The notes beneath the pieces were generated by a model that worked only from the letters and a program-made list of their open reading frames with translations, made no database searches and was not told where the DNA came from. Positions 6,310-64,000 of a stretch of 64,000 nucleotides of DNA are shown here, piece by piece. This stretch comes from Zygnema circumcarinatum SAG 698-1b (taxonomy: Eukaryota > Plantae > Zygnematophyceae): NCBI GenBank assembly GCA_037447605.1, contig CM074808.1, positions 1,922,001-1,986,000 on the forward strand, given 5' to 3'. Each line of letters starts with the position of its first letter. Within the stretch, counting starts at the first letter, position 1. Position numbers and translations under genes: made by a program.

Positions 6310-8720
6310 AAATAATCCCTCTTTTGAACTTCTAGTTTTGGCGCTGGCCCCAGCCCAATCAACCTCCCTGACTAATAGTGTTTCCCACTAACTCTTTGTT
6401 AGCATATCTCGCTGGGCCGCTTCCTTGGTGCCTACGACCACTCAATCAAGCCCCTCACTCAACTCTCGTGACGTAATGGTACCGCACTAATGTGCTTTTG
6501 GTCCCTTCAGGGAACACAGGGTTTCCCACCAGGCAATCGACGCATTGATTGCCGGTAAACAAGGCGTAATCGGTCGCTGGGTCCTCTTGCATTCTTCTTC
6601 AAAGAACTCGCATGAACCACACTCCTTCCTTCGGGCATGACAAGTACCTATGTATTGCCCTCCGCGGCTCGATAACGCCAACAGTCCTCGCGAATCCTTG
6701 AACCCACGCAAATCGCCCTCCTCCATTCAGGTAAACGAAACCCGAAGTCGAGCGTGACGTATCGACATCTCCTCCCCAATCTGAGTCTGTATAGCCAATC
6801 ACTCTGGTTGGCCCCCTCTCATACCTGATTCCATAATCGAGCGTCCCCTTCACATATCTGAAAATCCTCTTCACTGCCTCCCAATGCTCGAGGCCCGGAT
6901 TCTCCATGAATCGGCTGGCCGAGCTCACCGCCTTCGCCAAGTCCGGACGCGTTCCGATCATCAAGTACATTAGACTCCCAATCGCGGATCTGTATGGCAC
7001 TCCGAACATCTTCTGTGCCTCCGCATCCGACGAAGGTGACATCTCCTTCGATAGCCTAGTGCCGATCTCCATGGGGCTGGAGCATGGCGTGGCGTCCTCC
7101 ATTCGAAATCGGGCAAGTACATCTGAAGCATACTTCCTTTGACATAGAAACAAGCTTCCATCCCGCTCTCTTCTGCATTCCTTAGATATCGCTACTTCCC
7201 GTATCTCATGTTTTGAAATTTGCCTCAAGCAATTCCTTCAAAGACTGGATTCTTCAAGGAGAGGCTCACCATGATGAGATCGTCGACATAGATCCCAACG
7301 AACATGATGTCTGCCCCCTCTCCTTGACGGTACACTGAATGATCTGTCTCAAACCGAGCAAAGTCATTCCTCCTCAAAAGATCGTCAATCTTTTCGTACC
7401 ACACTCTCGGCGCCTGCTTCAAGCCGTACAGGCTCTTCACCAGTCGACAGACTAGGTGCTCCTTCCCGGGAACGACCTTCCCCTCCGGCTGCTCCATGTA
7501 AATCTCTTCCGTGAGATCACCATACAGAAATGCCGTCTTGATGTCCAATTGATGGACGTGCATTCCTTCAGCCGCTGCAATGGAAATCAAGGCTCTCAGG
7601 GAATTGAACTTTACCACTGGAGCGAACGTCTCCATGTAGTCAATCCCATACTGCTGGCCGTATCCTTTCGCCACTAACCGCGCCNNNNNNNNNNTCTTTC
7701 GCGCCTTGGGCAGTGCAGCCCAGCATCGCGCGCCAAAGGTCCTCAGATGGGAAACTGTGGGCTTCCTCCCACTCTACATCTGCTCAGGGACCTAGTCTTT
7801 CAAGACAGAAGATGGACATCTGTTCCTAATGTTAGCAGCCGTAGAAACTGCTTCTCCCCAAAAGGAAGCCGGAAAGGGGGAATCAATCAACATGGTCCTG
7901 GCCATGTCCCCCAATGTCCTATTCACACGTTCAGCTGCTCCATTACTCTGTGGGGAATAAGGGGCTGAGAATTCATGCCTTATACCGCGGTTCTTCAGAA
8001 ACGTTGCGAACTCGTTCGATTTGAACTCGCCACCATTGTCCGAACGAAAAGCTTTCAGCTTCTGTCCCGTCTCTGTTTCCGCCTAGTTCAGCCAGTCTCG
8101 AAAGGCTCCGAAAGCCTCTGACTTGTTCTTCAGGAGTGTAATCCAAATCTTCCTCGAATAGTCGTCAAGGAAGGTGACGAAGTACCGTGCTCCGCCACTG
8201 GTCGCCGGTGTAACAGGCCCGCACAAATCGGAGTGAACTAGCTCCAATCTCTCCTTCACTCGAAAGGACTCGTCTCCACTTCTCACGAACGGTTTCCTGT
8301 GCGCCTTGCCCTCCACACATTCTCGGCAAACCCCTAACTCCTTCTCCATTACACCCGGGTCTAGCCCACGGACTAGCCCCCTCTCAGCCAAGAGCTTCAT
8401 ACCTCTGTGGTGTAAGTGACCAAGTCTACGATGCCATACATCTACGGCATTCTCTGAAACTGCATTCACCTCCTCATGATTTTCCCTCTTATAATCAAGA
8501 TAATACAACCCTCCTCTCTCATAACCCCTGAACAGCTGTCTCCCAGTTTTTGAATGGATAGCCACGCATGACTTCTCCCCAAACAGAACATTGTATCCCT
8601 TCTTGCACACTTGGCTCACAGACATAAAATTCTGCATGAGGCCAGGGGTGTGAAGAACATCACCAATGTGCAGTTTATCCTGAACATCGTCTTCATTGAT
8701 GACTGAGCCCTCTTCGAGGA
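6310..8720 (-). mobile_element. Ty1/copia retrotransposon pol (protease end, GAG-pre-integrase, integrase, RT, RNase H), disrupted
   Basis: Minus-strand motifs in copia order: WHRRLGHLH, CRECVEGK, LVHSDLCGP, FVTFLDDYSRK, RSDNGGEF, PQSNGAAER; RT GIDYMETFAPV, QLDIKTAFLYG, KSLYGLKQAPRVW, YVDDLI; RNase H GYTDSDWGGD...RSTSG, KEGVW, DMLTK. Stop at 8083-8085, frameshift near 7230-7260, indels in RNase H, internal gap. Confidence 0.95.
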
Positions 8721-9079
8721 CCANNNNNNNNNNCTACCTCTCCCTTGCTCTCAACTCATCTACATTTTCCAAGGCCACAAACGATCCCAGCATATGGACG
8801 GCCTTTCAATAGGGAAGAAAAAGAAGGGCGCTTTCATTCAGTTGCCACCCGTTTATTTACAAAGTCGGCTCTCAGTCACAATTGGATGCACAGTGCAAAT
8901 TTGGGTCCTGGCAAAGCCTTGCCCACTTCCGAGCATGCGAATTCTATTTGACTGACAACAAAGCTCAGAGCGAGCGTTTTCTCTCGCTCTGAGCATATTT
9001 AAAAAAAAAAAAAAAAAAAAAAACAAATTTGAAAGAAGCGAAACTGTCCTCAAAGCCGCCTTTGCAAGGGGGCGCTCTC

Positions 9080-10075
9080 ATGGCAAGTGACGACAGAGTC
9101 TTCTTAGACGTTATTCATTTCGTGATCTTCCTAAGAGAGTACTGGAGAAGGCGGTACCGAAAAAGACTCCCCGTTTTTGAAGGAGGGAAGAAAGTCACAT
9201 ATGCTCCCCGAAAAACGAATCCTGACGAACAAAGAACTGCTAAGGGACAACAACGTGAGCACCAAAGCAATATTAAATATCACAACCTCCAGCTTTAAAA
9301 AGATGAATAGACGGACAGAAGGGCTTAATGATGTATGGTACAAAATGTAACTACCGTATCATCAGTTAGCCGGGACCGGATGGTTGCTAGAAGCCAACAC
9401 GGAACACCCTTCATTGAGAGAACTCACTATTTACAGCACTCTGCTCCACATCACCACATTTCCAGGACGAACTAAACACATGCCTGGCCATTGGCGGGCC
9501 TGAGCCACAACACCTAGAAGATCTTGTTCCCTTTACGGTTTAATGTGAGATAGTCTGCCTCTCGACAGGGGTAGAAAGGCTTACTCATTCATACAGCATC
9601 AGAAGAAGAGAGCGAAGCAGACTACCATGAGCTCAATTAGCTGAAAGCCGCCACAAGAGATATCCCCAAAATAGTAATTCCAGTAAGCCTACTCAGCCCC
9701 CACACCGTGAAGCTGCGCCATAGTTCCTGTATTTCCCAGCAAACACATCCATTAACTCCATCCTCTGCGTATGCTTTGATATCATCGCCTCAAGCATTAG
9801 GCCCTACCTCTAATACCTTCTCCAAAAAAGAAAGGTTTCAGATGATAATACTCACTTCCCCTTATCATACTCAGGCAAATGACCACAGAGATAATTGTTG
9901 GCCATACCCACCTTCAGAGGAGCTCCTGTGGTTTGTACACGCGAGCCAAAGCAGGAGTGTGGCCCCTACTCTGGCTGTGCAAGGCGGAGGCGAGGCTCTC
10001 CCACTCAACACGCGCCGCCATGAAATCTGAACAACCGCTGTCACCACCAAACTAAATATAAGCTTGTTTTAAAGT
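9080..10075 (+). pseudogene. Possible degenerate Crypton-type tyrosine recombinase (second copy)
   Basis: With frameshifts/stops: RHK/DIPKIVIPVSLL (9649-9694), PLSY/HTQ (9858-9875), VHASQ (9935-9949, HxxR with R>Q), TRRHEI* (10010-10030). Order and spacing resemble Crypton RHxDxxxCPxGAL...LSYxTQ...THxxR...IRRxGxW as recalled. Confidence 0.4.
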
Positions 10076-10390
10076 CAAGCAATATGACTTAATAAAACAG
10101 AACACGGATTGAGATAGAAAAGAACCCTAACAAACCCTAAAAGCAGATTTTTTCAAGTCAGGGAGGTCTGAAGGGATGCAAGTTGCAAGCAGGAAGGGAG
10201 AAGAAGAACAATCACCAAGTTGATGAAGAAAAAGAAAAATATAAAATGCATGGGGAGAAAAGTGGGCAAAGAAGCTTACTTTAACAATGGCGGCCTTCTC
10301 CAAGAAGCGCTGCAAATCTCTACCGCATGTAGTTGGACATTCTAATTTACTTCTTTATTTCCTTTCTCCTCGCTATACTATAGCTACACA

Positions 10391-11353
10391 TCATTCTTGT
10401 ATTTTATACCTCTCCAAAAAGTCTTTTGCTCGATCAGGTTCTTTTCCAACAATCCCCAATGCTTCACGAGCATGTCCACTGTTCCCCCTTTTAACAACAT
10501 CCCACCCTTTTAAAGCCCGGACCAACCCATCAATGGTTTTTGGACTGACAGCCTTCATCATTGAAGAGACATTCGCCACTGCCGTTTTCTCGTCTTCACC
10601 ACCCTCATCCATCCTCCATATAATTTCTATGACAATAGGATACATTCGATTCCACCAAGCATTTTTCCGATTATTTTCTCCTTGTCGTCCACCACTGTAC
10701 CAACGCGTCACACCAAAAAATGCCATCAATTCGATGATGGGCTTTTTTCCTTCTGGCCCGACAATCCAGAACTCCTTCCACAAGCTAAGTACATCTGTGT
10801 GCATGCTGACTAAATATCTATCTAACTGTTTCCCAACATGCACTCTAAGTCCCTGACCGTCTTTAGCCCCTGGCCCCATGGCTGGCCCCATGGCTGGCCC
10901 CATGGCTGGCCCCATGGCTGGCCCCATGGCTGGCCCCATGGCTGGCCCCATGGCTGGCCCCATGGCTGGCCCCATGGCTGGCCCCATGGCTGGCCCCATG
11001 GCTGGCCCCATTCCTGGCCCCATGGCTGGCCCCATTCCTGGCCCCATTCCTGGCCCCATTCCTGGCCCCATTCCTCGCCCCATTCCTGGCCCCATTCCTG
11101 GCCCCATTCCTGGCCCCATTCCTCGCCCCATTCCTGGCCCCATTCCTGGCTCTATGCCTGGCCCCATTCCTCTATGCCTGGCCCCATTCCTGGCCTGCCT
11201 CTCTGACTGCCTTGGCCCCAACCGTTTCTTTCCTCGTCCATGCTTGCTCCCCTGCCTCTTTGACTGCCTTGGCCCCAACCACCGTTTTTCTCGTCTATGC
11301 TTGCTCTCGCTTTGGATCAGCTTTTGGCTCCCAACCGCTTTTCTCGGGCCCAT
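10391..11353 (-). CDS. GCR1_C-like DNA-binding domain preceded by MGPA/MGPG repeats (likely 3' end of a Crypton-like ORF)
   Basis: YLVSMHTDVLSLWKEFWIVGPEGKKPIIELMAFFGVTRW...RK...R..IV.EI...AV...TIDGLVRALK fits the recalled GCR1_C pattern (S..I.TV.DLW.EW..G..G.PS..ELE..YG..WR....RK.F.RRK.I...I). Confidence 0.72.
   Translation of the reverse strand: MGPRKAVGSQKLIQSESKHRREKRWLGPRQSKRQGSKHGRGKKRLGPRQSERQARNGARHRGMGPGIEPGMGPGMGRGMGPGMGPGMGPGMGRGMGPGMGPGMGPGMGPAMGPGMGPAMGPAMGPAMGPAMGPAMGPAMGPAMGPAMGPAMGPAMGPAMGPGAKDGQGLRVHVGKQLDRYLVSMHTDVLSLWKEFWIVGPEGKKPIIELMAFFGVTRWYSGGRQGENNRKNAWWNRMYPIVIEIIWRMDEGGEDEKTAVANVSSMMKAVSPKTIDGLVRALKGWDVVKRGNSGHAREALGIVGKEPDRAKDFLERYKIQE
10871..11170. repeat. 12-bp tandem array (tggccccatggc x11 perfect, then tggccccattcc variants; ~25 units)
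   Basis: Eleven identical units 10871-11002; variant tcgccccattcc recurs at 11075 and 11123. Confidence 0.97.
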
Positions 11354-11720
11354 GCTTGCTCTGCCTCTTTGGATCGCCTTTGGCCCTAACCGCTTTCTTC
11401 TCGCCCATGCTTGCTCCCCGCTTTTGGATCAGCTTCTTGGCCCCAACCGCTTTTTCTCGCCCATGCTTGCTCCTCGCTTTTGACCGCTTTTGCCCCAACC
11501 GCTTTCTCGCCCATGCTTGCTCCCTGCCTCTTTGACTGCCTTGGCCCCAACCGCTTTCTCGCCCATGCTTGCTCCTCTGCCTCTTTGACCGCCTTTGGCC
11601 CCAACCGCTTTTCCTCGGCCCACGCCAGCTCTCAGCTTCTTTGATCGCCTTGGCCCCAACCGCTCATTTCCTCGCCCATGCTTGGCCCCGCGGCTCCTTT
11701 GCATGTTCTTGGCCCCTGCC
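11195..11720. repeat. ~55-bp degenerate minisatellite
   Basis: c(c/t)atgcttgctc...ttggccccaaccg recurs at ~11238, 11295, 11349, 11405, 11461, 11511, 11563. Confidence 0.9.
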
Positions 11721-12429
11721 TTCTCTCGCCTAATATCTGTCCTTTCCTCGCATGCCGCCATAGTACTCCCACCTTCGCTTCCCAGCCTCCGCCACCTTTG
11801 GTCCATATCACCCCGCTTTGTCGCCCCAATTTGTGTCTGTGTCTATCGCTTCCCTGCAAATATTGCTCTTGCCCATAACCAACAAAAAAGCTGACACTTG
11901 AAAACTGTACAACTAGTGTGAAAAGTAGGACTGTAATGAGGATATCAATACAATTTTGTTTGATACACTAGAGAGATGAGAGTGATGAGAGTGATGCAGC
12001 ATGGTTTTACTCACCATAGTTCGAGTCCATGACTGAGATTGTGTTGTCTTAGCTTGGATCCTGTCAAAGGCCTCCTTCTTCCTCCTCCCCCTCGATCCCG
12101 CCGCTTCTCGCGAAATTGAGAACTTCTTCACTCAAATAACAACTCAAGACAGCGACGCCCCGGCCACCCCACACGAAGCCCTTCCTCCTTCTACTTCCTC
12201 GCCCACTCCAACCGGGCCTACGCTAGTCAAAGTGATTACCAATGTAAAGCAGCTAATATTAACAAAAAGTAAAAGAAGCGGGGCCGCAGCAGAAAACATA
12301 AGAAGAAGTAGCTAAATAAAGAATGTGAGTGCTGTTTTCTCAACAATAGCAAAACAGTCAAAACAGCAAAGCAGCAGCAGAAGTTGTTATAGTGAGCACT
12401 AAAAGCAGCTAAGTGCAAAAAGGGCCAAA

Positions 12430-13600
12430 GAACAAAAAAAAGCAAAGAATAACCTTGAAAGGAAGACTATACCCACGCCACCGCTGGAAGAACGGATATC
12501 TGGGCGAACAATGGAATTTATGAGCTAACGCATGCATCTTGCACAAAACACATTTGAAAAATAACGCAAAGATGCCCACAAAGCCTCCCCGCCGAAGATT
12601 CCGGGACTTAAAAGGCACTCCACAAGTAACCTACACATAAAAACACATAACGTTAACTCCTTTCCTCCTCCTCTCAATCTTTTCATTACCCTTTTCTCTC
12701 GCTCTTCCACCCAAAAAGAGATCCACGCAGTGATGACATATTACTTGGCCGCATAAAGAGTTTGCTGTCGGAAAGAACCGGGAAAACCATATTCACAAAG
12801 TCATTTCATTTGGTTTAAGATGCTAACGCCCAAAAAATAATCATCGCCTTCCTTTTTGAATCCCCGCAGTTAATCTCTACGCACGGAGTGTGACAATCGG
12901 GTTAAGCGTACTGATCGCAGCGGATTTATTCAAGCTCGCCCCACCTCCCCGCCACCTCGGATTTGATCAAACCTACAAGAATACAACATTCCCTTGTCAT
13001 ACCACGTAATATGCGCGTAAGGTTCCCTAACAACGGAGAGATCTAAGCGCCAATGATTTTTCACTTAACTTTGATCATGCTTCACGACACACATTTCCAA
13101 CCTCAAAGGGAGTTTCCTTTGACGGGAGTCACAAGGTTTTTGTGACCGCAAATCAACAAACAAACGCTATTAATAAAAAATAATACATTTGTGCAAAATA
13201 TAAAACAAATACACAAATAATAGCTTGATCGATAAGTTTAGACTTCACTCAAAGGTACCAAGATCCGAGGAGGTTCTTCCTCGATACAACGTAACCTCGC
13301 TGAACAAATATCGCGATATCCATCCATGACCGCAGTACCCGGAATCTCAATCGCTTCCAAAGCGAAGCCCCATATCGGGATCAAGCCCTCCCGAAGTTCT
13401 TTTTCCACGCCACACCACACTTAGGACAAGACATTCGTGACAAGCCAATAGTCATGTAGCCATATCATCAATAAATGGGGACGACCAACCGAATCACCTT
13501 TGGTCATCTCCTCAAGATCATTTTCACAGAAATTTACCATACTACCATATTTTAAATATGTTTCCTCGCTGAATTTAATTCCATATACCTTAATAACTTT
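12430..13600 (-). pseudogene. Degenerate Crypton-type tyrosine recombinase (NDC10_II-like) upstream of the GCR1_C-like domain
   Basis: Across frameshifts on the minus strand: WRGKRTSGGLDPDM (~13410-13370), LTRILRG (13021-13001, THxxRG with H>R), DQIRGGG/RW (~12968-12940), LTRL...LRGFKKEGDDYFL (~12905-12830), LRRGGF.../FVQDACV/LAHKF..P (~12600-12480). Confidence 0.55.
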
Positions 13601-13844
13601 CAAAAGTCTCTGAAGCTTAGTTTATCCTACGCCTCCCCTCGCTAGATCAATGAACATCCCATTACCAAAAAACTAAAAGACATTTAGAGAGGAGGAGGAG
13701 GAGTGGGGGGGAGGGGGGAGAGCGCGTAGCGAGGAGAGTAAGGAGAGACGGGCAAAGCAAAGAGGAAAGAGAGAAAGCAGCGAACAAATGTTGCACGCAC
13801 GCACGCAGAATGAAGACGCGGTAATGCACGCAAAATGCAATGCG

Positions 13845-14560
13845 TAATGCAAAATGAATATGTTTGCAGAATGCGTAACGCAGAATGCGTAATACAGATA
13901 AGTGTATCGCAAAATGCAAAATGCAGAATGCAGAAAATGCAGAATGCAGAATGCAGAATGCAGAATGCAGAATGCAAAATGCAGAATGCAGAATGCAGAA
14001 TGCAGAATGCAGAATGCAAAATGCAGAATGCAGAATGCAGAATGCTCAATGCTCAATGCTCAATGCTCAATGCTCAATGCTCAATGCTCAATGCTCAATG
14101 CTCAATGCTCAATGCAGAATGCAAAATGCAAAATGCAGAATGCAAAATGCAAAATGCAAAATGCATAATGCATAATGCAAAATGCACAATGCAGAATGCA
14201 GAATGCAGAATGCAGAATGCAGAATGCAGAATGCAGAATGCAGAATACAGAAATAAATGCCAAATGCAAAATGCAGAATCGAGGAGAATGCGAGAAGCAG
14301 AGAAAACCAACGTGAGAATGTAGATAGCCAGATTCGCGAGAAACCAACAGCGGGAATGTAGAATATGAAGCGCAGAATGTAAGAATGCAGAATGCAGAAT
14401 GCGAGAATCTGAATGCAGGAGAATGCAGAATCTTGAGAATCGAATGCAGAATCTGAGAAAGCAAATACAGGAGAATGCGGAGAATGCAGGAAATGCAAGA
14501 TGCGAGAATCTGCGAATGCAGAAATACAAAAGCGAAGCGGCGAGAATCTGAAAGCAGCAG
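13845..14560. repeat. Compound heptamer microsatellite (AGAATGC / TCAATGC / AAAATGC)
   Basis: Blocks of (gcagaat)n, (gctcaat)n and (gcaaaat)n, degenerating after ~14250; short outlier array at ~14905-14965. Confidence 0.95.
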
Positions 14561-15633
14561 AAGAGTAGAAAGCCAAAAGCAAAGCGGCCGCAGGCGGCCT
14601 TGAGAAGTGAAAAGCAAGAAGCGAAGAAGCCAATAGCATACGCCTGGCTTTATAGGCATGTCAGCGTCTTTGTTCCTCATCTTCATCTTCAATTGTGGTT
14701 CACTGCAAATATTGTCCTTTAAGCTCTTCATCTCTTATAATACATCCATTCTTCTTCACTGAATGCAGAGGCATCATCAAATAAGCTCAGCTTAGTCTTA
14801 GGTCAACCCTAGATGATGAGGATAGAGATGAGGAATTCTTGGATCCATTTCTGCAATAGAAGAAAGAGGTAAGTAAACGACGCTGCATAAATGGATGGAT
14901 AGAAAAAAAGATGGAGAATGCAGAATGCAGAATGCAGAATGCTGAAAGCAGAATGCAGAATGCAGAAAGATGGATAGAGGCGTACCTGCAACACATGCGG
15001 TGGTAATGTGTAAGGGGGCGCGGCCGCCACACACCGCCCCCCCCAAGCAACCAGGGCCTCCCCCGCCCGCTCGGGCTGTGTAGCAAACACGCCTCCAGCA
15101 GAGATCAAACTCTAGACCTACCGGTACTAGGACACGATGTTCAAATTCAATGGGCGGTGGGCAAGCGGCAGCAAGCACACCCGAAGTTCAATTTCAGTGG
15201 TTTTAAATGATGTGGTGCCAACGTGGATGAACATGCAGACGTGGAATTGACGTGGCAGATGTGGTGCCGCCATGGCATCTACGTGGCAACCGTCACTGCG
15301 GTGATCGCGCGCTCGGCCGGCGTCGCCCGCTTGGGCGCTACACCGTACCTAGGAGGATGTTGCAGGGCGGGTGGGCGGCCGGGGGGCGGGGAGCTGCAGC
15401 ATTGCCGATCGTGGCGATCGACGGCGGGGAGGGGGGGAGCCTCGCTGCAGGCGGTGCACAGTTCTCACCCCCCCCCCAAAATTACGCCTGAGTTTTCCAA
15501 TCGTGCGCCGCCGCGTGGCGTTGAAGATCCGTTCGAGATGCCACGGGGGTACGGCGGCCACGCTGGCGCACAGCCACCAACGCGCGGTGACCGTAGGTCG
15601 GGGTGGCGGCACGGGACTGCCTACCTGCCTGAA

Positions 15634-15651
15634 CCCTAACCCTAACCCTAA
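15634..15651. repeat. Interstitial telomere-like (CCCTAA)3
   Basis: ccctaaccctaaccctaa; (TTAGGG)2 also at 30435-30446. Confidence 0.6.
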
Positions 15652-16034
15652 TCCCGCACGTACGGTAACCGCGGTGGGCCACGGTGGACGAGTAAGTGTG
15701 TCCACGTGGCGTCCGCTGTTTGGCTCGCGCGACCTCTGATGGAACCCGCAATTCTCCCTTCATGACTCTAATCCGATGTGGCGGTACAGGCAAACGATGA
15801 TGGAAACCCACCCTATGTGTATTGCAGGTGACTTTACAACAAAAATCAACTACTAATACAAATCACGCAGGCCTCATGTTGTAATATTTAGATTGATTAT
15901 GTTTTTTTTTTTTAAACCACACACAAACTGCGACGACAGAATGAGATGTTTGTGTGTGTGTGTTTGTGATGTTTGATGTTGAGATGTTTGATGTTTGTGT
16001 GTGGTTTTTTTTTGGTTTTTTTCCCATTTTAGGG

Positions 16035-16890
16035 CTACGTGGCAACACCTGACTGGATAAGCGACATACCCCATTTCCTACAAACGATCCAAAAACACAC
16101 TACAACACCCACGTGGCAATTTCTGACAATAACTGACTGGTTATCCATATACCCAAATTACTGTACATTAGATCCACACAAAGTGCTGAACCAATAAGAA
16201 TGCACCACGTGGCCACTTTAAACACGCTGCGACACATACCCTATTTACAACAATAGATCCCGTAAAACATTCAAACCGAACGCTGTCGTAAATAGAAAAC
16301 GACACGTGGCAATGACTGAATGGGAACGCGATATACCCCATTTTCTGCGCATTTGATCTAACAAAACGCACAACCAATCAGGACGCGCGACGTGGCAACG
16401 TCAGACTCGCGGCAACTATACCCCATTTTCATTAAATTCATCTTTGACAACCTAATCGAATCCGTAGGTCACATAAAACATTCAACGGGAACGCCGTCAG
16501 CCGACGTGAAAACCACACGCAGCACCAATGGTTACGATACCCCCATTTTCGCCGCATTCGATCCAACGCAAAAGCACACCAACCGACGCTACGACGCGGG
16601 CAACGCCGACCGCTGCAACTATACCCCATTTTCATTAAATTCATCTTTGACAACCTAATCGGTCCGTAGGTCAACAAGCATAAAACATTCAGTTCTAACG
16701 CTGCCGCATCTAGAAAAACCCATTATCGCGGCAATCTGAATGGTTACGCGATATACCCCATTTTCTGCGCATTCGATCCAACGAAAAGCACACCAAATCC
16801 GGACGCGCGACGTGGCAACGTCAGACTCGCGGCAACTATACCCCATTTTCATTAAATTCATCTTTGACAACCTAATCGAACCCGTCGTAC
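16035..16890. repeat. Degenerate ~75-100-bp tandem array, each unit ACGTGGC + ATACCC(C)ATT + GATC; internal 420-bp-offset duplication
   Basis: ACGTGGC at 16037, 16111, 16207, 16304, 16390, 16810; 16326-16460 nearly identical to 16746-16880. Confidence 0.8.
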
Positions 16891-17044
16891 GGATGAAAAC
16901 GATGACAAAGCTTTTGCCTACGGCAACGCAAAAAGATGAACCAGTGAGAAACCCAACCACATATAGACGGGTCACCATCACAGAACTCAGTATGGAATTC
17001 TTCCACATGAATGATGACGGAGCGGGCAGTTGCCCTGTGATGGT

Positions 17045-20000
17045 TCAACCTGATGAGGCTCGTGACATGGCAGCCGCCAGCACAAGCAGCAGCGGCATGA
17101 GCAGCAGGAGCAGGTACGGGAAGGCCTCCCAGAGAAGCCGCTCATCGCCCTCATCTTCACTCGCTTTGTACGCATTGTTGAAGTCGCCAGTCAGCGAATC
17201 GAAGTATTTCCTGTAGACGCTGCTGTCATATGAGTCCTCCCCCCGCACTCGCAGATTCTCGGCAGCCTGCAACATCTCACAGACTGGTGAATGAAGGAGT
17301 GCCCCGCCCATTCTAACAAAGCTGCCAAGGAAACACAAGGCATGAGCAGCCGCGGTGATTGAGCCATCCAACGCAGAGCCATCACCATGTGACAATGCGA
17401 AGTTCACAAACGTGGAGTGCAGGTCACTACAGTGGGCAGCTTCCGGTGCAATAATGATGCACGCATGCACCCATTTTTAAACTTCTGAGATTTCTCCGAA
17501 TGAACACCTGAAGAGGCCTCCTTTCAGTGAGGATAAGGTCACACCTGAAAGCCGAACAGAAGCTGACGCGCCCTTTTCCGCACAGAACCATCAGGATGGC
17601 CTACCAGCCTCTCATACAATTCACGAGCATCTTGTGACCTGCGGACGTGAAGAGAGGGTAAGGTTCCGCCATGGACGAAAACCGTAGGAAGAAAGCTGAG
17701 AAAGGTCATCCCCAGCTCCTCTAAATCCTGCTGAAAGGAGGCATATCCTATAGGATGTACCAATGAAACCAGCAACCAGCAAGAGTTCGAGCGCAGGGGT
17801 AACCTTGCCATGGAGTCGAGGCAGACCGCTTTTTGTAGCATGGCCTTGCCATGAAGCACACTCTGCAGACAACGCACAAGGGCAGGAACACGAGCGGATG
17901 TCAAAGTCCATCAGGGTTTCCAACAATCACAAAACCAATTCAACGCGGAGTCCTTCACTCAGGAAATTGCTTCAACAACAAGAAGTCAAAAGCGAATTAA
18001 TGTTCACCCACCTTGAACACAGTTTTTGAAGTAACCATATCAAATTTCTCGAAAGCATCACGCAATCGGCCCACATCCATGAGTGCCAAACCTGCTTCCA
18101 TCGCCTGTCAGACACAAAGCACCACTGGTCAAGAAGAAAGAATCACAGCTAGCTGCTCCCAACTTTTGGACACGTTTAAGCAAGCTGGGTAAAACCGGAA
18201 GAGCTCCCACGATGATCTACACCAACGACTGGGAATCAGTGCTAATACAAAGACTGGCGTGCCCCCTTATTTGGAGTGCAACGCTATAGTACTTGCTTCT
18301 TGGCTGTTCAAACGTAGTTGACATAAGTTTGCTTTGCAAAGCTCCATAATCTCAGCCCTTGTCTTCACCACACAAACAGTTCTGCTGACATGTTGCTCAC
18401 CGCATCACACTCAGCCTTTACAGTCGGATCCAAGTCTATCCCTACTAGCCGCCTGTACTGCTCCAACATTTCTCGCGTTTTCCTTTCACGAGCTTCTTTC
18501 TCCTCCGTTGTCTCCAGTGGCTCCCCTGGGCGAATGGTCCTGCCTCCCCCATACTGCCCTTCGCGTCCCGTGTAGGTCGCTGTCATTCTTTTTCCATGGC
18601 AGCTATGCTCAAGCAGGATAATCCTGAATTTCAGCAGCAAAACACGATTCTGATTCAAGCTGCCAATTGCCTCTTCCACACACACAAATGTCGGGGTAAG
18701 TAATTTGTCTTTGGCCCATCGCAGTCCCACAGTGTAGTGCAGTCAATTGTGTCTTGCAGTTGAATTAGCGCTGTTTGTTATATGCAGCAAGATCTCACCG
18801 TCCGAGAAATGTCCCTAGGCCGTGGGAAAACCCCCCAAGTAGCTACTTTAGGCTTGTAGGCTTCTTCACCAGATTCGAGAGATGAGGCACCCCCCTCTGC
18901 TGCGCTGGCCTCCCTAGTGATGATCTCCACTTCTGGAAGGGGACCACGCGGCATGTCCATTGCCGCATACAGTCCAGCTGGCGTCGCCCGGGAGTCCTTC
19001 TTGTCAGAGAAATCAAGACCAATAAAATCCTTGCTGGAGATAGCCTGAGATTTGAAGGCCTGAACCTTCTCACTAGCTGCTTTCGAGTCTGATACTTTTC
19101 GCCTCACGATACCATCCCGAGTGATTATTTCTACTTCTAGACTTGAACTAGTTTTTGATTGGGAAACACCAACATCGAGAACTTGAGGTGCAGATTCTGG
19201 GAAAGGTTCCGAACCCGCTCGTTCTCTTTGCCCATTCAATGCTGCCATCATTTCAGACTGCTGCTGTTGATAATCATTTTCAGGCAGCATTGCAGAAAGA
19301 GATGGTGTCGATTCACTTCCGCCCGGACTCTGCATCACTAGAGGGTCTTGAGCTTGTTGGAGGCTTGTTGACACGAAACTCTGGACAGATGCCGCCTCCG
19401 TATATCCTAAGTCTGGTCTCAGGTCATTTTCAGTACTCCAAGTCGCGAGCAATTCTGAAGATTCACGACGTATAACTGCTGACGGCACCGCACCTGCCTG
19501 TACGCCTTTCAATATCCTATCGTCACTAGAAGAAATCTCCTCAAAAGTGCGAGAGCTTTGCAGAGGTGCCTTCCCTCGGACTATCTCGACTGTTGGCAGC
19601 TTTCCGGGGGCTTCTAAGGGCTGTGAAGAAACCTTAGATTCTAAACCTAGCTTCTTAACCGAGCCAGACGATTGATTGGCTTTGTAAGCTTTAGCCCTTT
19701 CCAGAGCAGACATTGCAGCGGATTTGGGCGCCGACTGATTTTCTTTTTGCTGCTTATAGGCTGCAGCTTTCTCAATCATTGAGCTGCTTTCTGGGCTGAC
19801 TTTGGCATTAGCTGAAAAAACAGCATTGACGCCACTTTTTGTGTCTGGACTTACAGCACCTTGATCATCCGGTTGAGCTGGCTTCACATCATCAACTGCA
19901 CACTGAACAGGAGCGGCAAGCTTCAGTCTGCGCCTGTACTGCAAACCCAGGTGTGCGCCCTGCGCAGTTCCCCTTCCAAATCTGGCCGCACGAATTCTGC

Positions 20001-20103
20001 TTGATTTCTGCGTTGCCTCTTGAAGCGACGAGGACTGAACGCCTTGCCAGCTTCCCCTTGTAGCAATGCTGGCCTCCATGCCATACAGAACAGCAAAAAC
20101 CAT
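17045..20103 (-). CDS. Conserved plastid-type TPR-like protein with C-terminal transmembrane helix (multi-exon)
   Basis: Transit-peptide-like N-terminus; exons YKPKVATWGVFPRPRDISRT, YGGGRTIRPGEPLETTEEK...AECDA, LMDVGRLRDAFEKFDMVTSKTVFK, LHGKAMLQKAVCLDSMA, ARELYERLVGHPDGSVRKRARQLLFGFQ, ...YLLLLLMPLLLVLAAA; GT-AG boundaries seen. Confidence 0.75.
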
Positions 20104-27078: not shown

Positions 27079-30000
27079 ATGGCGGGCGGCGACTGCACGA
27101 CGTGGAAGGCCTCGTCCAACGGCGCGTGGGCGGGCGATAACCCCGTCCACTTCGCGCTGCCGCTGCTCACCATCCAGCTCTGCCTCATCCTCTGCTTCTC
27201 ACGCATATTCAGCATCCTGCTGCGACCCCTCCACCAGCCACGCGTCATTGGGGAGATTCTGGTTAACTTCCCTTCCTATATTCCCGTTAATTCTAGTAAA
27301 ACTATTCTCTCCTACCCTCTGCTGCTTAATCTCCCCTCCGCAATTTTTTAATTCCAAATGGTTTTCTGACTAGCTGCATGTTTCTGCGATTCGCAGGGCG
27401 GCATCGTGCTGGGGGCCTCCGTGCTGGGCAACATCCCGCAGTACCAGGAGGACCTCTTCCCCACCGCGAGCCTCACGGTGCTGACCACAGTGGCCAACCT
27501 TGGACTGCTCTTCTTCCTCTTCATGGTGGGTCTCGAGCTCGACCTCCGCAGCCTCCTCCGCACCGGCAAGAGCGCCGTCATCATCTCCGCCAGCGGCATC
27601 CTCGTGCCCTTCTCTCTGGGCGTGGGCGTCTCCTTCATCATCCGCCGCGTGCTGGGCATCGTCGACAGCAAGTTCCTCCCCTTCGTCGTCTTCATGGGCG
27701 TGGCCATGTCCATCACCGCCTTCCCCGTGCTGGCGCGCATCCTCGCGGAGAGGAAGCTCCTCACCACAGAGGTGGGGCAGCTCGCCATGTCGGTCGCCGC
27801 AGTGGACGACATCACCGCGTGGGTTCTGCTCGCCCTCGCCATCGCCCTCTCGTCGAACTCGAGCGGTCAGATCGTGGCTTGGATTCTCCTCTGCGCGCTC
27901 GCCTTCCTGGTGACAATGTTCGGCGCAGTGAGGCCCCTCATGGCGCGGATCAGCCGGCAGGTGGTCGAGAACGAGCCCATCCCCGAGTGGATAGTGGGCA
28001 TCACTCTCACAGGCGTTCTGGTGTCGGCTTTCGCCACAGATGTGATCGGAATTCACGGCATTTTCGGCGCTTTTGTGTTCGGTTTAGTCATACCCAAAGA
28101 CGGGCCCTTCGCGGGCATCATCATGGAGAAGATTGAGGACTTCACCATGACCTTGCTGCTGCCTCTGTACTTCGCGTCCAGCGGTCTCAACGTGCGGTTC
28201 CGGTCCATGTCCGGATGGAGGTCCATTGGGCTCGTCGTGCTCGTGATCGGAGTGGCCTGCATCGGGAAGATTGGTGGTACCATCTTTGCAGCAGTGATGA
28301 CCAAAATTCCTTTCCGCAAGGCTCTCGTGCTTGGTGTCCTTATGAACACAAAGGGGCTGGTGGAGCTCATCGTTCTCAACATCGGTTTGCAAAAGAAGGT
28401 GAGGCATGCAGATCCAACACATGAAAGTGGCGCTCGCCATCAGACAAGTGGGTTATGCCGGTATGGCCTTTTTCAGAGGTTGAAGCATGTTTGTTAGGAG
28501 AGGTGAGTTCAAAGCAGTGAACTCAAACATTTTACTCAAATGGAATGCATGTTTGTACACTGCAGGTCATCACCCAGGAGCTTTACACCATCATGGTGAT
28601 CATGGCTCTTGTCACAACCTTCATGACGAACCCTCTCGTCACATGGCTGTATCCTTCCGCGGAAGGCGGCGAGAACAAGGCGCGAGAAGAAGCGAAGAAG
28701 AGCGACGAGGACCTGCGCTTGCTAGTGTGCATCCATGGCGCGCACTCAATCCCCCCCGCGCTCAACCTCATGGAGATGTCGCGCGGCACTCGCAAGCATC
28801 CTCTCAAAGCCTTCATGCTGCACTTGGTGGAGTTCTCAGAACGCTCCTCCGCCATCATGATGGTGAGAAACTTGTGGCTCTGGAGAACGTAAACGTGTAC
28901 TTGCGGAGCTCTTGCGTTTTGTTTTCATCTGTCCCTTTTCTATTGCCATGAACTTAAAACCCCAGATTTACTCAATATGTGCATTCTAATGCCGAAATTG
29001 CTTAGGGGGGCGTTCACAGGTGACGCGAGTTCGGAAAAATGGAAAGCCATTTATAAGCAAGGATGGGAAGAAGAAGGGACCGGACCAGGTGGCTGTGGCC
29101 TTCCAGGCGTATGCGCGGCTGAGCAAGGTGTCGGTGGAATCCATGACCGCCATTTCAGGCTTCTCGAACATGCATGAAGACATCTGCAGCGTAGCTGTTG
29201 ACAAGCGCGTCAACCTCATCGTCCTGCCATATCACAAATGTGCAGTAAGTGTTGCTATCGCTTGCATCCTTTGGAACGTAGCATCATCAGCAATTTCATC
29301 CTTCTTCTCCTTACTTCCTATGTTGCGTCACAATATTCTGTTGCTGTCACTTCGGCCAGCATCAGCTTCCCCGTCATGCTCCTCTCCCGTTTAGTGCCAC
29401 ATTTCAGTCAACCCAAAACGCTGTCGAGACCATGTGCTGCTGACGCGCTTTCCCCTTGTTCCCCTGCCCGAGTGCCGACCTGCTCCCTGCAAAGCCTACC
29501 TTGTTGTGAACTTGCCGCTCTCCCTCATGCTGCGGATCCCTGCAGGGTCCCGACGGGCTGGAGATCGGCAACCCGAACCTCCTCTCCGTGACGCGGCGAG
29601 TGCAGCGCGCGGCCCCGTGCTCCGTGGCGGTCCTCGTGGACCGCAGCCTGGGGGAGGCGGTGCAGGTCCCCCCCGAGCAGCTCGAGCAGCGCGTGGCAGC
29701 GCTCTTCTATGGCGGACCGGACGACCGCGAAGCGCTGGGCATCGCGCAGCGCATGGCGGAGCATCCCGGGATCGCTGTCACCGTCATCCGCTTCCTTCCT
29801 GCGGCGCGGGAAGAGGTCGTGCTATCGATGCCTGCCGCAGCGCAGGGAGAAGAGCAGCCGGAGGAAGGGTTGGCATCCGCTCCTGACGACAGCGAGGACT
29901 GCGAGGCGCAACTGGACGAGGAGGCGCTGCAGACTGTGAAGGCAAACGCGAGAAAATTGAGCAAAGAGGAGAGTAGACCAGTGAAGGCGACTCACAATGC

Positions 30001-30370
30001 TGAGGAGGTTGGGACTCAAACGCTCTTTTACGAGGAGCGCGAGACTGAGGACGCGGTTGCGGCAGCCATAGATGTTTTGGGAGAGTCTTACAACTTGATA
30101 ATTGTTGGTCGAGGGCGACGGCCTGCACCACTGTTGGTCCGAGCCATGGAGGCGAGAACACCCTCCGTGTGGCAGAGCGAGGAGGCTGCCGGGCTGGGCA
30201 CCGTGGGAGCAGCCCTCGCAGCCCAGGACGCGGCCCCTGCAGGGGCCTCCCTCCTGGTGGTGCAGCGCCATGACTCGGCGCTCGTGCAGACGGCATCGCT
30301 TGCGCCGAGCGGGGCCGCCACGCCGCGGAGGCAGCACCCTGCTGACGAGTACGCGGCACCAATGCCTTAA
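27079..30370 (+). CDS. CHX: Cation/H+ exchanger, CHX family (CPA2)
   Basis: SSNGAWAGDNPVHFALPLL...QPRVIGEIL; FLFMVGLELD; ITAFPVLARILAE; GIHGIFGAFVFG; LMNTKGLVELIVLNIG; LHLVEFSERSS; APCSVAVLVDR; FYGGPDDREAL. Confidence 0.95.
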
Positions 30371-44093: not shown

Positions 44094-45554
44094 ATGGCGC
44101 CCTCCACCTGCACCATCTTCCAGAGCTTCGGGAAGACCCGCCATGGACGCCCGAGCCCTGAAGCCCCTCTTCCAACTTCTCCAGAGCATTCACGACCGCC
44201 CGCCTCCGTCCAGGTCCCGCCGGCCAGGCAGCCGCACAACAGCGGCAGCGGAAGCAGCAAGAACCTCTTCTTCTGTGGCGCGGTTCCGCCCCTCGAGGCG
44301 GAACGCTCAGACTGGGACGGCGACGATGGGTGGGCGGCGGGCGGCGAGCAGGAGCTCCTGCGGGGCCTCCCGCGCGAGGTGGGGGCGGACATTCTGGCGC
44401 GCGTGGACCGCGCCTCGCTGCCCGCCCTCCGTGGCGTGTGCCGCAGCTGGAAGGCCTTCGTGGAGGGCCGCGAATTTCGGGCGGCGCGGAGGCGGCGGGG
44501 CACCGCAGAGGAGTGGGTTTTCATAGTGGGGGAGGTGCGCGGGCAGCAGCAGCCGCAGCTGCTCGCCTTCGACCCCGCCGCTGCGCGCTACTACCACCTC
44601 TCGTCGCTCCCGCCCAAGCTCTTCTCCCCGCCTCTAAGCCTTGGGGGGGGGAAGGTGGCGCCCATGCAGCGGCAGGACTTTGGCCTGGTGGCCCTCTCTG
44701 AAGAGCTGGTGGTATTTGGGGCCCCGGTTGGGAAGCTGTTCGGGAAGCGCGCGGGCGGCGTGTGGCTGTACAGCACTGTGCGCAACAGGTGGCGGCGAGG
44801 GGCGGAGATGCCCACCGCGCGGTCGGGGTTTGCGTGCGGGGCCATCGCGGGGAAGGTCTACGTGGCGGGCGGGAGGGACCGCACGGGGGTCGCCATGACC
44901 TCTGCGGAAGTGTATGACCCACAGAGTGACACGTGGGAGGCGCTGCCGTCCATGGCGACGGCGAAGCACATCTGCACGGGCGCGGTGGTGGGCGGCAAAC
45001 TGCACGTGCTGGGGTGCGGGGACCAGTGGCGCTGCCAGCCGCAGAACCTCTTGCAGCCCGTGCGGATGGAGGTCTACGACCCTACGCAGCGCGCTTGGAG
45101 CACGCTCGCGCTGGAATGCCCCGCGCCGAAGGTGTGGGGCGTGCCGTGGCACGACCAGGCCTCGCCCGTGGCGTGGCAGAACTGCCTCTATTGGGTCGGC
45201 TGCGGCGCCCTCAAGCTGCGCTTCTACGACGCGGCCGCCAACGCCTTCGTGGGGTACTTCGAGAACGAGCTCTGCGCCTACGACGAGCACGCCAAGCTCT
45301 CGGGGTTCCTGCACGGCCCGCCCGCGGGGCTGCTGCAGGCGCGCGAGTCGTGCGGGCTCGCCGTGGCGCGCGGGGAGCTGCTGGTGCTCGGAGGCTGCCT
45401 CTTCGACCCCGCGGGGCTGCCCACGCTCTGCCCGCCCGACGTGCAGGTCCACACGCCTCGCGCGCCCGCGGGGGAGGCATGGCGGACGCTCTGCGTCGCC
45501 GCGCCCGGCCCGCGCCTGGGGAAGGTCTGGAGGTGCGTTACGGCCGCGCTGTGA
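44094..45554 (+). CDS. F-box/kelch-repeat protein (intronless)
   Basis: F-box LLRGLPREVGADILARV...LRGVCRSWK; kelch repeats WRRGAEMPTARSGFACGAIAGKVYVAGG, AEVYDPQSDTWEALPSM, GAVVGGKLHVLG. Confidence 0.93.
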   Translation: MAPSTCTIFQSFGKTRHGRPSPEAPLPTSPEHSRPPASVQVPPARQPHNSGSGSSKNLFFCGAVPPLEAERSDWDGDDGWAAGGEQELLRGLPREVGADILARVDRASLPALRGVCRSWKAFVEGREFRAARRRRGTAEEWVFIVGEVRGQQQPQLLAFDPAAARYYHLSSLPPKLFSPPLSLGGGKVAPMQRQDFGLVALSEELVVFGAPVGKLFGKRAGGVWLYSTVRNRWRRGAEMPTARSGFACGAIAGKVYVAGGRDRTGVAMTSAEVYDPQSDTWEALPSMATAKHICTGAVVGGKLHVLGCGDQWRCQPQNLLQPVRMEVYDPTQRAWSTLALECPAPKVWGVPWHDQASPVAWQNCLYWVGCGALKLRFYDAAANAFVGYFENELCAYDEHAKLSGFLHGPPAGLLQARESCGLAVARGELLVLGGCLFDPAGLPTLCPPDVQVHTPRAPAGEAWRTLCVAAPGPRLGKVWRCVTAAL

Positions 45555-56313: not shown

Positions 56314-57045
56314 ATGCTCTTTCAGGCCCTTCAGGGCGTCCATGGCGGCCAAGGTCTCGCCCAGCATCTCCCCCTATCCCACATATCGAAGAACGATCAC
56401 AATCAGCATACTGTGTGTATTCACAGCGTTTTTCTAAGGCAGCAAGAGCGTAGGCTTGAATTATATACGTCTCACGATTACTGGTGCAGGACTATAGGCA
56501 GAACAGCCTTGAGGATTCATGGTGAGGGCAGCAGCAAGCTCAATATACCTACTGCCTATGGCGGCTCTGTCCGTAGTCTTCCCATCCGGCTTATATCTGT
56601 CGGGAAGTCTCGGAGTCCGGGCACACATCTCCTCGTTGAACAATACAGCTCAAAGATAAAGCGGTATTGCCCCTTCGAGGAGCTGCAATTGCGACCGAAC
56701 CCTAAAAATAGTCCTGAGGCGCATGTTCAGATTCTTGCAGAGGGAGAGCGCGTGTTGCGATCTTTAAACTCGCGGGACTTCGTGGTCGTGCTCGATGAGA
56801 GGGGGAAAAAGTTGAACTCAGAGCAGTTTGCAAGTCTCATTGCCAGCGCGGGAGAGTCTGCAGCATCGGCTATAGTGGTTTGTGTGGGAGGTCCCTACGG
56901 CCATGGCGACGCTGTGCGGCAGCGTGCTGACTGCATCGTGTGCCTGTCGTCCATGGTGCTCAACCACGAAGTAGCGCTTGTCGTAGCAATGGAGCAGCTT
57001 TACCGGGCTTGGACAATTTTACGAGGAGAGAAATACCATCACTGA
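56314..57045 (+). CDS. rlmH: 23S rRNA pseudouridine methyltransferase RlmH-like (SPOUT), probably organellar
   Basis: LPIRLISVGK, VVLDERGK, VGGPYGHG, LSSMVLNHEVALVVAMEQLYRAWTILRGEKYHH. N-terminus/start uncertain. Confidence 0.92.
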   Translation: MLFQALQGVHGGQGLAQHLPLSHISKNDHNQHTVCIHSVFLRQQERRLELYTSHDYWCRTIGRTALRIHGEGSSKLNIPTAYGGSVRSLPIRLISVGKSRSPGTHLLVEQYSSKIKRYCPFEELQLRPNPKNSPEAHVQILAEGERVLRSLNSRDFVVVLDERGKKLNSEQFASLIASAGESAASAIVVCVGGPYGHGDAVRQRADCIVCLSSMVLNHEVALVVAMEQLYRAWTILRGEKYHH

Positions 57046-61786: not shown

Positions 61787-62147
61787 GGCTGCTGCCGCCT
61801 TCCCTGCTGCAACCTGCCCACTCCGCCACTCCCTCCCTCCCCTGCCCCTCTCCTCCCCCCCTGCCCCTCTCCTCCCCCCCTGCGACTCCGCCCCCTCGCC
61901 TTTTACAGAAGCTTGGCCAGTTGGCCTCCTTTGAAGCTTCCTTGGTCAGCAAAGCCACTCACAACTTGCCACGTCTGCATAATTTATGACATGGCAGTTT
62001 CTGATTGGTTCCTAACTAATACCGTACGGAAGACTTGACATCGTACGGTACGGTACCTTGTGTGTCGATTTCGGGCCTGCGTGCCTGCGCTGCATGGATG
62101 GATGGATGGGTGGATAGATGGAAAACAGATTTCTCCTTCTCACGTAG

Positions 62148-62335
62148 AGCAAGGAAAATGGCATTGAACTCACGATGGCGAGGCAAAAGACAAAAGACAA
62201 AAGACAAAAGCAACATGTGGAACCACGAGGAACTGGTCGCAAAGGACCTAAGAACAAAAGACAAAATCTAGGAACGGAAAACTACGCCTCGGCGCAACAA
62301 CGCAGCCCCTAGAAGCAGCCGAATCACATGGTCAT
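62148..62335 (+). repeat. Copy of dispersed MARPS...GRKGPK repeat with internal (CAAAAGA)3
   Basis: ggaaaatggcattgaactcacgatggcgagg...gtggaaccacgaggaactggtcgcaaaggacctaag...actacgcc...ctagaagc. Confidence 0.75.
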
Positions 62336-62707
62336 TCTGCAGCGGCGGAGGGGCTCGCCCTTGTTCTCACTGATTTTGCCCTTCTCTGCGCTTTATGTGG
62401 CTGCCAAAAAGGCGCATTTCTGGGAGTGGCTGTATTGATACATGTCAATAAAAGACGAAAACAATTGAGGAACACAAGTTTTTACGATAAAAGCTAAAAT
62501 TAAATCGTGGTTACCATATGAAATTGAACGAACTCAAATGAAAGAGTATGTGTAACAGCAGCAGCAACACTACTGTGACAACACATGCAATTATTTACTG
62601 CCCAAATCCGTTTCTTCGAGGCAACCATTTAAAAATAGACCACAGAAACCAAGAACCTGAATACTTCGTTCAGTCAAAATCAATAAAGAAACAACACTAT
62701 CCGTTGT

Positions 62708-62963
62708 CTAGCTAGGATCACCTCCAAATCCAAAGCGAAAGCCTCCATTCTGCGTGTCAACAGCCGCTGTCCAAAATGAAGCCTTTTTCTTCTTTTCCAT
62801 GCGTTCCTGCTCTGCCTTCCGGAGCATTTCCAACTCCTGAGGAAATGCTTCATTAAACCGAGCAAGAAACCGATCATGTAAAGACTCCCGATCACGTGTG
62901 CCGGACACGAGCGCACATGCATTTGGACGCTTCAGGAACTCCAAAACCGTCAGAATATTCCGC
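62708..62963 (-). CDS. Terminal exon of an unidentified gene extending beyond the window
   Basis: Acceptor tgtgcag| at 62963; RNILTVLEFLKRPNACALV...KKKKASFWTAAVDTQNGGFRFGFGGDPS*. Confidence 0.55.
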
Positions 62964-63084
62964 CTGCACAGGGTTGAAACGAACTCAGCTGCAACCAAGA
63001 GGTGCAATTGTCTTCACACAATGACTGCAACCAGCCTACGACACTCCGACTCCAGTTCAACGACCAGCTCTAACCAGATACCCT

Positions 63085-63866
<782 letters not shown>

Positions 63867-64000
63867 CCAGTAAGGTACGGACTAGGACTACTTCCGCTCA
63901 GCTTGAATAATAAAAGGCGTCGTGACACAGATCATTTGTATTGCCTTCCAAACCTCAACAAAAAAATTCCGAATAAATAATGAAGCTGAATCGACCATAA

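Follow-up and report, generated by a model that had tools for sequence, protein, structure and literature searches.

Our results suggest that the minus strand between positions 10391 and 13570 of the window, a 64,000-nucleotide (nt) stretch of the streptophyte alga Zygnema circumcarinatum SAG 698-1b (GenBank assembly GCA_037447605.1, contig CM074808.1, positions 1,922,001 to 1,986,000), is probably, judged from its sequence, a decayed CryptonF-type DNA transposon copy, truncated at its 5' end and belonging to a multi-copy family. CryptonF elements are defined by a tyrosine recombinase together with a GCR1_C domain, with short terminal direct repeats (PMC3212892). In the window copy, the recombinase is followed by GCR1_C on one strand and as one unit. 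The original prediction had claimed this architecture for a streptophyte, and the claim was borne out, with an NDC10_II-type recombinase and then a GCR1_C domain located between streptophyte-type genes. Both halves have homologues in which the same order and strand are kept, the recombinase half carries lesions, and variant copies are present in other sequencing runs.

The ancestral element would have encoded a single protein, made of an N-terminal SAM-like DNA-binding domain, an NDC10_II/Crypton-type recombinase and a C-terminal GCR1_C domain. In the window copy, the recombinase would have lost its function by stops, frameshifts, a change of the catalytic Tyr and loss of the N-terminal domain, the linker minisatellites would have expanded, and the GCR1_C segment alone would have stayed open, with an altered tail. 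The transposition mechanism is inferred.

The GCR1_C-like domain and the recombinase remnants upstream

The minus strand contains an uninterrupted open reading frame (ORF) of 320 amino acids (aa) at 10391-11353. The N-terminal two thirds of this ORF are translated tandem repeats, and its last 156 aa (10394-10861) are non-repetitive. At its C-terminal end lies a helical, GCR1_C-like domain of about 140 aa (10406-10822, minus strand), which is presumed to bind DNA. An exhaustive HMMER search with this domain, covering 1.84 billion cluster representatives, identified 12 relatives, the best with an E value of 7e-20 (7e-20 to 5e-12 and 37-44% identity for the top ones). Seven of the 12 matched GCR1_C (PF12550) in a Pfam scan, two of them reaching the cut-off of 23 bits (P0005 with 28.8 bits and P0004 with 23.1 bits) and five remaining below it. 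Note that P0005, the sole named relative, comes from the green alga Myrmecia bisecta and carries the UniRef name GCR1-like domain protein.

Residues W28, F31, G35, K39, M46, N64, W69 and R72 are conserved in the family alignment (A1), and the AlphaFold model obtained from the family alignment is all-helical (pLDDT 75.7, pTM 0.76). The top structural match of this model in the ESM Atlas was an ascomycete cluster annotated 100% as PF12550 (TM 0.56 over 109 residues, 3.1 A), the remaining rows having TM <0.4, and a protein language-model search ranked a GCR1_C cluster second (0.93). Nothing similar to the domain was present in the PDB, by sequence or by Foldseek, so apparently no GCR1_C structure has been solved. 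By transitive homology, by its predicted fold and by the position of its closest homologue, P0001, behind an NDC10_II-type recombinase, we identified the domain as a diverged GCR1_C. An uninterrupted minus-strand domain of GCR1_C pattern had been proposed at about 10830-10430; it now stands on homologues that pass PF12550 and on the fold match, not on a direct Pfam match.

The coding sequence of P0001 lies on a metagenome scaffold of 4 kb (L003; ENA ERZ19570860 scaffold_7901), downstream of three ORF pieces that are colinear on the Pfam profile NDC10_II: 1694-2062 (profile positions 36-138, 46.7 bits), 2076-2567 (positions 154-266, 25.7 bits) and 2555-2767 (positions 270-298, 12.4 bits). NDC10_II (PF16787) is the Crypton-type recombinase fold. 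Moreover, the N-terminal piece of L003 matches the SAM-like domain at the N terminus of another protein, P0013, with 58% identity. Since L003 combines NDC10_II pieces, a SAM-like piece and GCR1_C, it carries a bona fide recombinase-plus-GCR1_C gene and hence served as our probe. Two other contigs encode L003 paralogues (P0015 and P0016) that are 84-90% identical, and the L003 catalytic piece, used as a query, returned two near-identical paralogues only, too few for a recombinase profile. As a separate observation, L003 869-3734 resembles a complete CryptonF-type gene, with the SAM-like piece, the three NDC10_II pieces and GCR1_C.

The L003 pieces were aligned to the minus strand of the window with a protein-to-DNA dynamic programme that allows frameshifts of 1-2 nt, with shuffled queries as controls. 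A frameshift-aware search of the upstream region had been called for in the original prediction and, run with the L003 recombinase, it recovered three colinear blocks. Block 1 (13262-13570, minus strand) scored 123, versus 45±5 for the shuffles (z ~15), with 38 of 106 residues identical. It corresponds to approximately NDC10_II positions 36-138 by way of L003 1694-2062, contains stops at 13494 and 13452 and five frameshifts, and retains 'LRGDDQR', 'GKRTSGG' and 'CGHGWISRYLFARL', matched to L003. Plain tblastn with the first L003 piece also hit 13511-13302 on the minus strand (32% identity across 71 aa; E=4e-5, the search space being 9 kb), crossing an in-frame stop. Block 2 (12717-12986, minus strand; 28/91 identical), which represents the catalytic half, has stops at 12870 and 12823, six frameshifts and the motifs 'GRW', 'LRGF', 'DDYFL' and 'VFPVL'. 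Block 3 (12478-12659, minus strand; 21/64 identical) has four frameshifts and reads 'FVGILRYF' and 'VFVQDA'. When blocks 2 and 3 were chained, using two adjacent L003 ORF pieces concatenated, the score was 80 versus 47±6.6, a value reached by 0 of 200 shuffles, under permissive penalties only.

The recombinase-fold sequence is recognisable indirectly: the L003 NDC10_II piece aligns to block 1, and two more blocks are colinear with it. The order on the minus strand (13570-13262, 12986-12717, 12659-12478 and then 10822-10406) is that of L003. In contigs from the same organism an extra T follows 12829, and two letters are deleted at 12799 and 12801. Since these indels coincide with the inferred -1 (12829) and +2 (12803) shifts, they provide independent support for the alignment. 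As for the recombinase strings noticed originally, RGDD, DQIR/GRW, LRGF..DDYFL and FVQDA fall inside the alignments and in the right order, but the equation of 'LT[R]ILRG' with THxxR could be confirmed in neither frame.

A chance or compositional match, or a segment from a fungal contaminant, would fit with the lack of a direct Pfam match and with motifs that were first matched without database searches. We consider this explanation hardly credible and rejected it, as it is refuted by the homology of both halves (E of 7e-20 and z ~15), by the GCR1_C fold match with no fungal matches in sequence, by the plant-type genes on the contig and by the recurrence of the segment in public runs that 9 studies produced from one organism.

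Decay of the window copy

By its sequence the window copy is a relic with a dead recombinase half, and it is presumably immobile. The aligned recombinase blocks carry four stops (13494, 13452, 12870 and 12823) and about 16 frameshifts. Opposite the presumed catalytic Tyr of L003 ('AYL'), the window has Thr ('STL'). No intact HxxR is present, the sequence reading HITW or TRILR depending on the frame, with no confident alignment; an intact R, HxxR, H/W and Y in an open frame are not found in this recombinase. Moreover, the SAM-like N-terminal domain was undetected with the L003 probes within 3.4 kb upstream (13550-17000). Given these stops and frameshifts, the Tyr to Thr change and the missing N-terminal domain, the notion of an intact or candidate-active transposon is not sustained.

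The same lesions bear on the possibility that the locus is an intact or near-intact, intron-containing Crypton gene that is still mobile, its apparent frameshifts being introns or assembly indels. Relatives such as L003 are likewise split into ORF pieces, and two of the inferred frameshift sites coincide precisely with indels in other family copies. However, the stops at 13494, 13452 and 12823 lie within well-aligned blocks and therefore cannot be introns, and the shifts are of 1-2 nt, inside conserved motifs and mostly outside homopolymers. The Thr at the Tyr position and the N-terminal domain that was not found also argue against this explanation, as do the nearby host genes: the host ORFs of the window are long and unbroken, which makes a wholesale assembly error unlikely. 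An intact gene is thus very improbable, and we retain the decayed CryptonF-type copy.

Expanded repeats fill the linker that joins the recombinase to GCR1_C. A 57-bp minisatellite (11194-11684, about 9 copies) occupies it, with its lower end forming the start of the ORF, and a 12-bp microsatellite (10869-11195, 27.6 copies) encodes the GPGM/GPAM repeat within the ORF. Directly upstream of the recombinase remnant lie (GCAGAAT)n heptamer satellite arrays (13684-14731 and 14787-15100), which are open in all frames and generate spurious ORFs of 120-210 aa. These arrays may mark the site where the 5' part of the element was lost.

A second, opposite-strand recombinase remnant, considered at 9080-10075 (plus strand), found no support with this probe: the L003 recombinase, SAM-like and GCR1_C probes were silent there on both strands. 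Across 8600-10400 (both strands) and 13550-17000, all the L003 probes gave z <2 except one of 2.5. In the public runs, a distinct repeat contig of high depth spans positions 9036-9551.

Family copies and the open GCR1_C segment

Several non-identical copies of the element exist. In public data, 20 runs of one organism, generated in 9 studies, contain approximately 1/5 to 1/4 of the stretch, and contigs from 4 public runs (4 studies) were aligned to the window. These contigs span 10411-10899 with a single difference (99.8% identical over 489 nt). The GCR1_C-bearing contigs join two versions of the 3' flank (9987-10352, minus strand), one of them colinear with the window and about 95% alike, the other, a variant from other runs, without 10005-10279. 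Between the domain and this flank, where the window has the final codons and stop of the ORF (10353-10410, minus strand), the contigs from each of the four aligned runs carry a different sequence of 65 letters, which makes the tail of the window copy atypical. Accordingly with the family alignment, the window protein is about 15-25 C-terminal residues short compared with its homologues, and the conserved basic tail is gone. A 1160-nt contig represents a diverged paralogue of 11908-12863, its alignable pieces being 3-17% different and three stretches being too unlike to align.

The variant and diverged contigs in the public runs point to a probable multi-copy family. In one run the depth of the family contig was 238, versus 9-22 for neighbouring low-depth contigs, a 10-25-fold excess. 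This suggests a moderately repeated family, for which we infer a copy number from contig depths that cannot be calibrated. No further copy is present within the window, and neither an insertion polymorphism nor an empty site was seen in the contigs of the same organism.

Several results weigh against the CryptonF-type reading, the uncalibrated copy number being one of them. The Pfam scan of the 320-aa ORF and of the isolated domain gave no match even at E<=1, the PF12550 gathering cut-off (23 bits) not being reached, and the scan of 10 upstream stop-to-stop pieces gave no recombinase match. Blocks 2 and 3 are weak singly (z of 2.2 and 1.6) and non-significant under strict gap and frameshift penalties; owing to the heavy fragmentation of the region, their chained signal vanishes at such penalties as well. 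Some of the frameshifts, as single indels, could be assembly errors. Finally, the 468 nt of the GCR1_C segment contain 0 lesions, versus about 1 per 40-50 nt in the recombinase remnant, and this unequal density is not explained by uniform neutral decay of one old copy. The preservation of GCR1_C could possibly reflect selection on a GCR1_C-only product, gene conversion, or a mosaic that pairs an old relic with a 3' fragment of younger age.

Selection on such a product is what would be expected if the 320-aa ORF, or a GCR1_C-only family, were a DNA-binding gene of Crypton origin that the host retained after decay of the recombinase. This explanation, which we regard as unlikely, draws on the fact that about 9 lesions would be expected in the 468 nt at the density of the recombinase remnant and none is seen. 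The open GCR1_C segment is nearly identical to the contigs that span it, as against only about 95% for the 3' flank next to it on the contig, and the recombinase region is crossed by a separate contig whose aligned pieces are diverged. Near-identity of this kind could, however, stem from a young 3' fragment or from gene conversion instead of selection. In the same direction points P0013, from a transcriptome, which has the N-terminal domain and GCR1_C without a catalytic domain. By contrast, the runs that contain the window segment consist of contigs of uncertain kind, and no canonical intron joints were seen in them. The ORF itself is an awkward host gene: its N-terminal two thirds are translated minisatellite, its tail is unlike the majority form of the family and lacks the conserved basic C-terminal stretch, and the high contig depth suits a repeat better than a host gene. 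We therefore favour the decayed transposon copy. If true, a GCR1_C family kept by a streptophyte alga would mean that the plant lineage, independently of yeast, had seen a domestication like those of Gcr1, Msn1 and Hot1.

P0013, a protein of 1062 aa and a candidate domesticated Crypton derivative, is encoded on a transcript-like contig (L001; Logan SRR8128908 contig). Between its SAM-like N-terminal domain and its GCR1_C, no catalytic domain was detectable. With region 900-1062 of P0013 as query, no long proteins with a similar GCR1_C were recovered.

Known CryptonF elements and the host setting

The window copy resembles CryptonF in having an NDC10_II-type recombinase followed by GCR1_C, in probably belonging to a repeat family of a green-lineage genome, and in showing no sign of long terminal repeats (LTRs), terminal inverted repeats or reverse transcriptase adjoining it. 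An actively transposing element, CryptonF-1_cRei, has been described in Chlamydomonas reinhardtii, with the terminus CACCG and the target CAYCG (PMC9977147). The green lineage was therefore already known as a host, and the original prediction gave an outdated picture in stating that Cryptons are known mainly from fungi, animals and stramenopiles. In contrast to CryptonF and CryptonF-1_cRei, the window copy is dead and 5'-truncated, and its GCR1_C is too diverged for a direct Pfam match. Its linker has been replaced by expanded minisatellites, and its host is a streptophyte, not a chlorophyte, a fungus or an oomycete.

L003, the nearest of the relatives identified, shares with the window copy the order of the recombinase blocks (31-36% identical) and GCR1_C (36-43% identical). 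It differs in keeping HLFR, GRW, AYL, the N-terminal SAM-like piece and open ORF pieces. The yeast proteins Gcr1, Msn1, Hot1 and Cbf2/Ndc10 also derive from CryptonF elements (PMC3212892). As occurs in these Crypton-derived proteins, GCR1_C survives in the window copy and recombinase catalysis is lost. Unlike theirs, the window recombinase is frameshifted and not kept as a dead fold.

Our literature search found no description of Cryptons in streptophytes. The present copy widens the documented host range of CryptonF-type elements from fungi, oomycetes and one chlorophyte alga to the streptophyte branch, which includes the land plants. Being a relic, it adds nothing new on mechanism; it is a known kind of element in an added host lineage. 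It is useful as a marker of the family and as a pointer to a possible host take-over of GCR1_C domains in the streptophyte lineage.

Concerning its origin, the exhaustive HMMER search with the GCR1_C domain gave no fungal or oomycete proteins at E<=1e-3, which argues against both contamination and recent transfer from fungi. Since the relatives are green-lineage or metagenomic and not fungal, long residence is favoured over recent transfer. The horizontal acquisition proposed as one origin of the element thus finds no support, the named relative being that of the green alga M. bisecta. Contamination with fungal DNA, the other concern raised at the outset, is excluded by the host genes of streptophyte type that share its contig and by the lack of a fungal relative.

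The relic is flanked by a copia-like ORF on one side and by three host genes on the other. The copia-type LTR retroelement fragment (8083-8637, minus strand) comprises the gag-pre-integrase and the start of the integrase core, and it adjoins the Crypton relic. The host genes, all on the plus strand, are the exons of a CHX-type cation/H+ antiporter (27406-30370), an F-box/Kelch ORF that is intact and embedded in an island of 68% GC (44094-45554) and a SPOUT (RlmH-like) methyltransferase ORF (56314-57045). The best named relatives of the methyltransferase are from liverworts, a moss and Closterium, with 52-61% identity, which marks the host as a streptophyte that has no closely related sequenced species in the database.

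The longest ORF near the relic, of 441 aa (18778-20103, minus strand), has no Pfam family at E<=0.01. At the end of the window, 62001-64000 is a purine-rich, low-complexity array of extreme strand asymmetry (GC skew 0.36, AT skew 0.48), in which repeat-encoded ORFs overlap at 63083-63980 and which cross-matched low-complexity parts of another sequence, L002, in tblastx.

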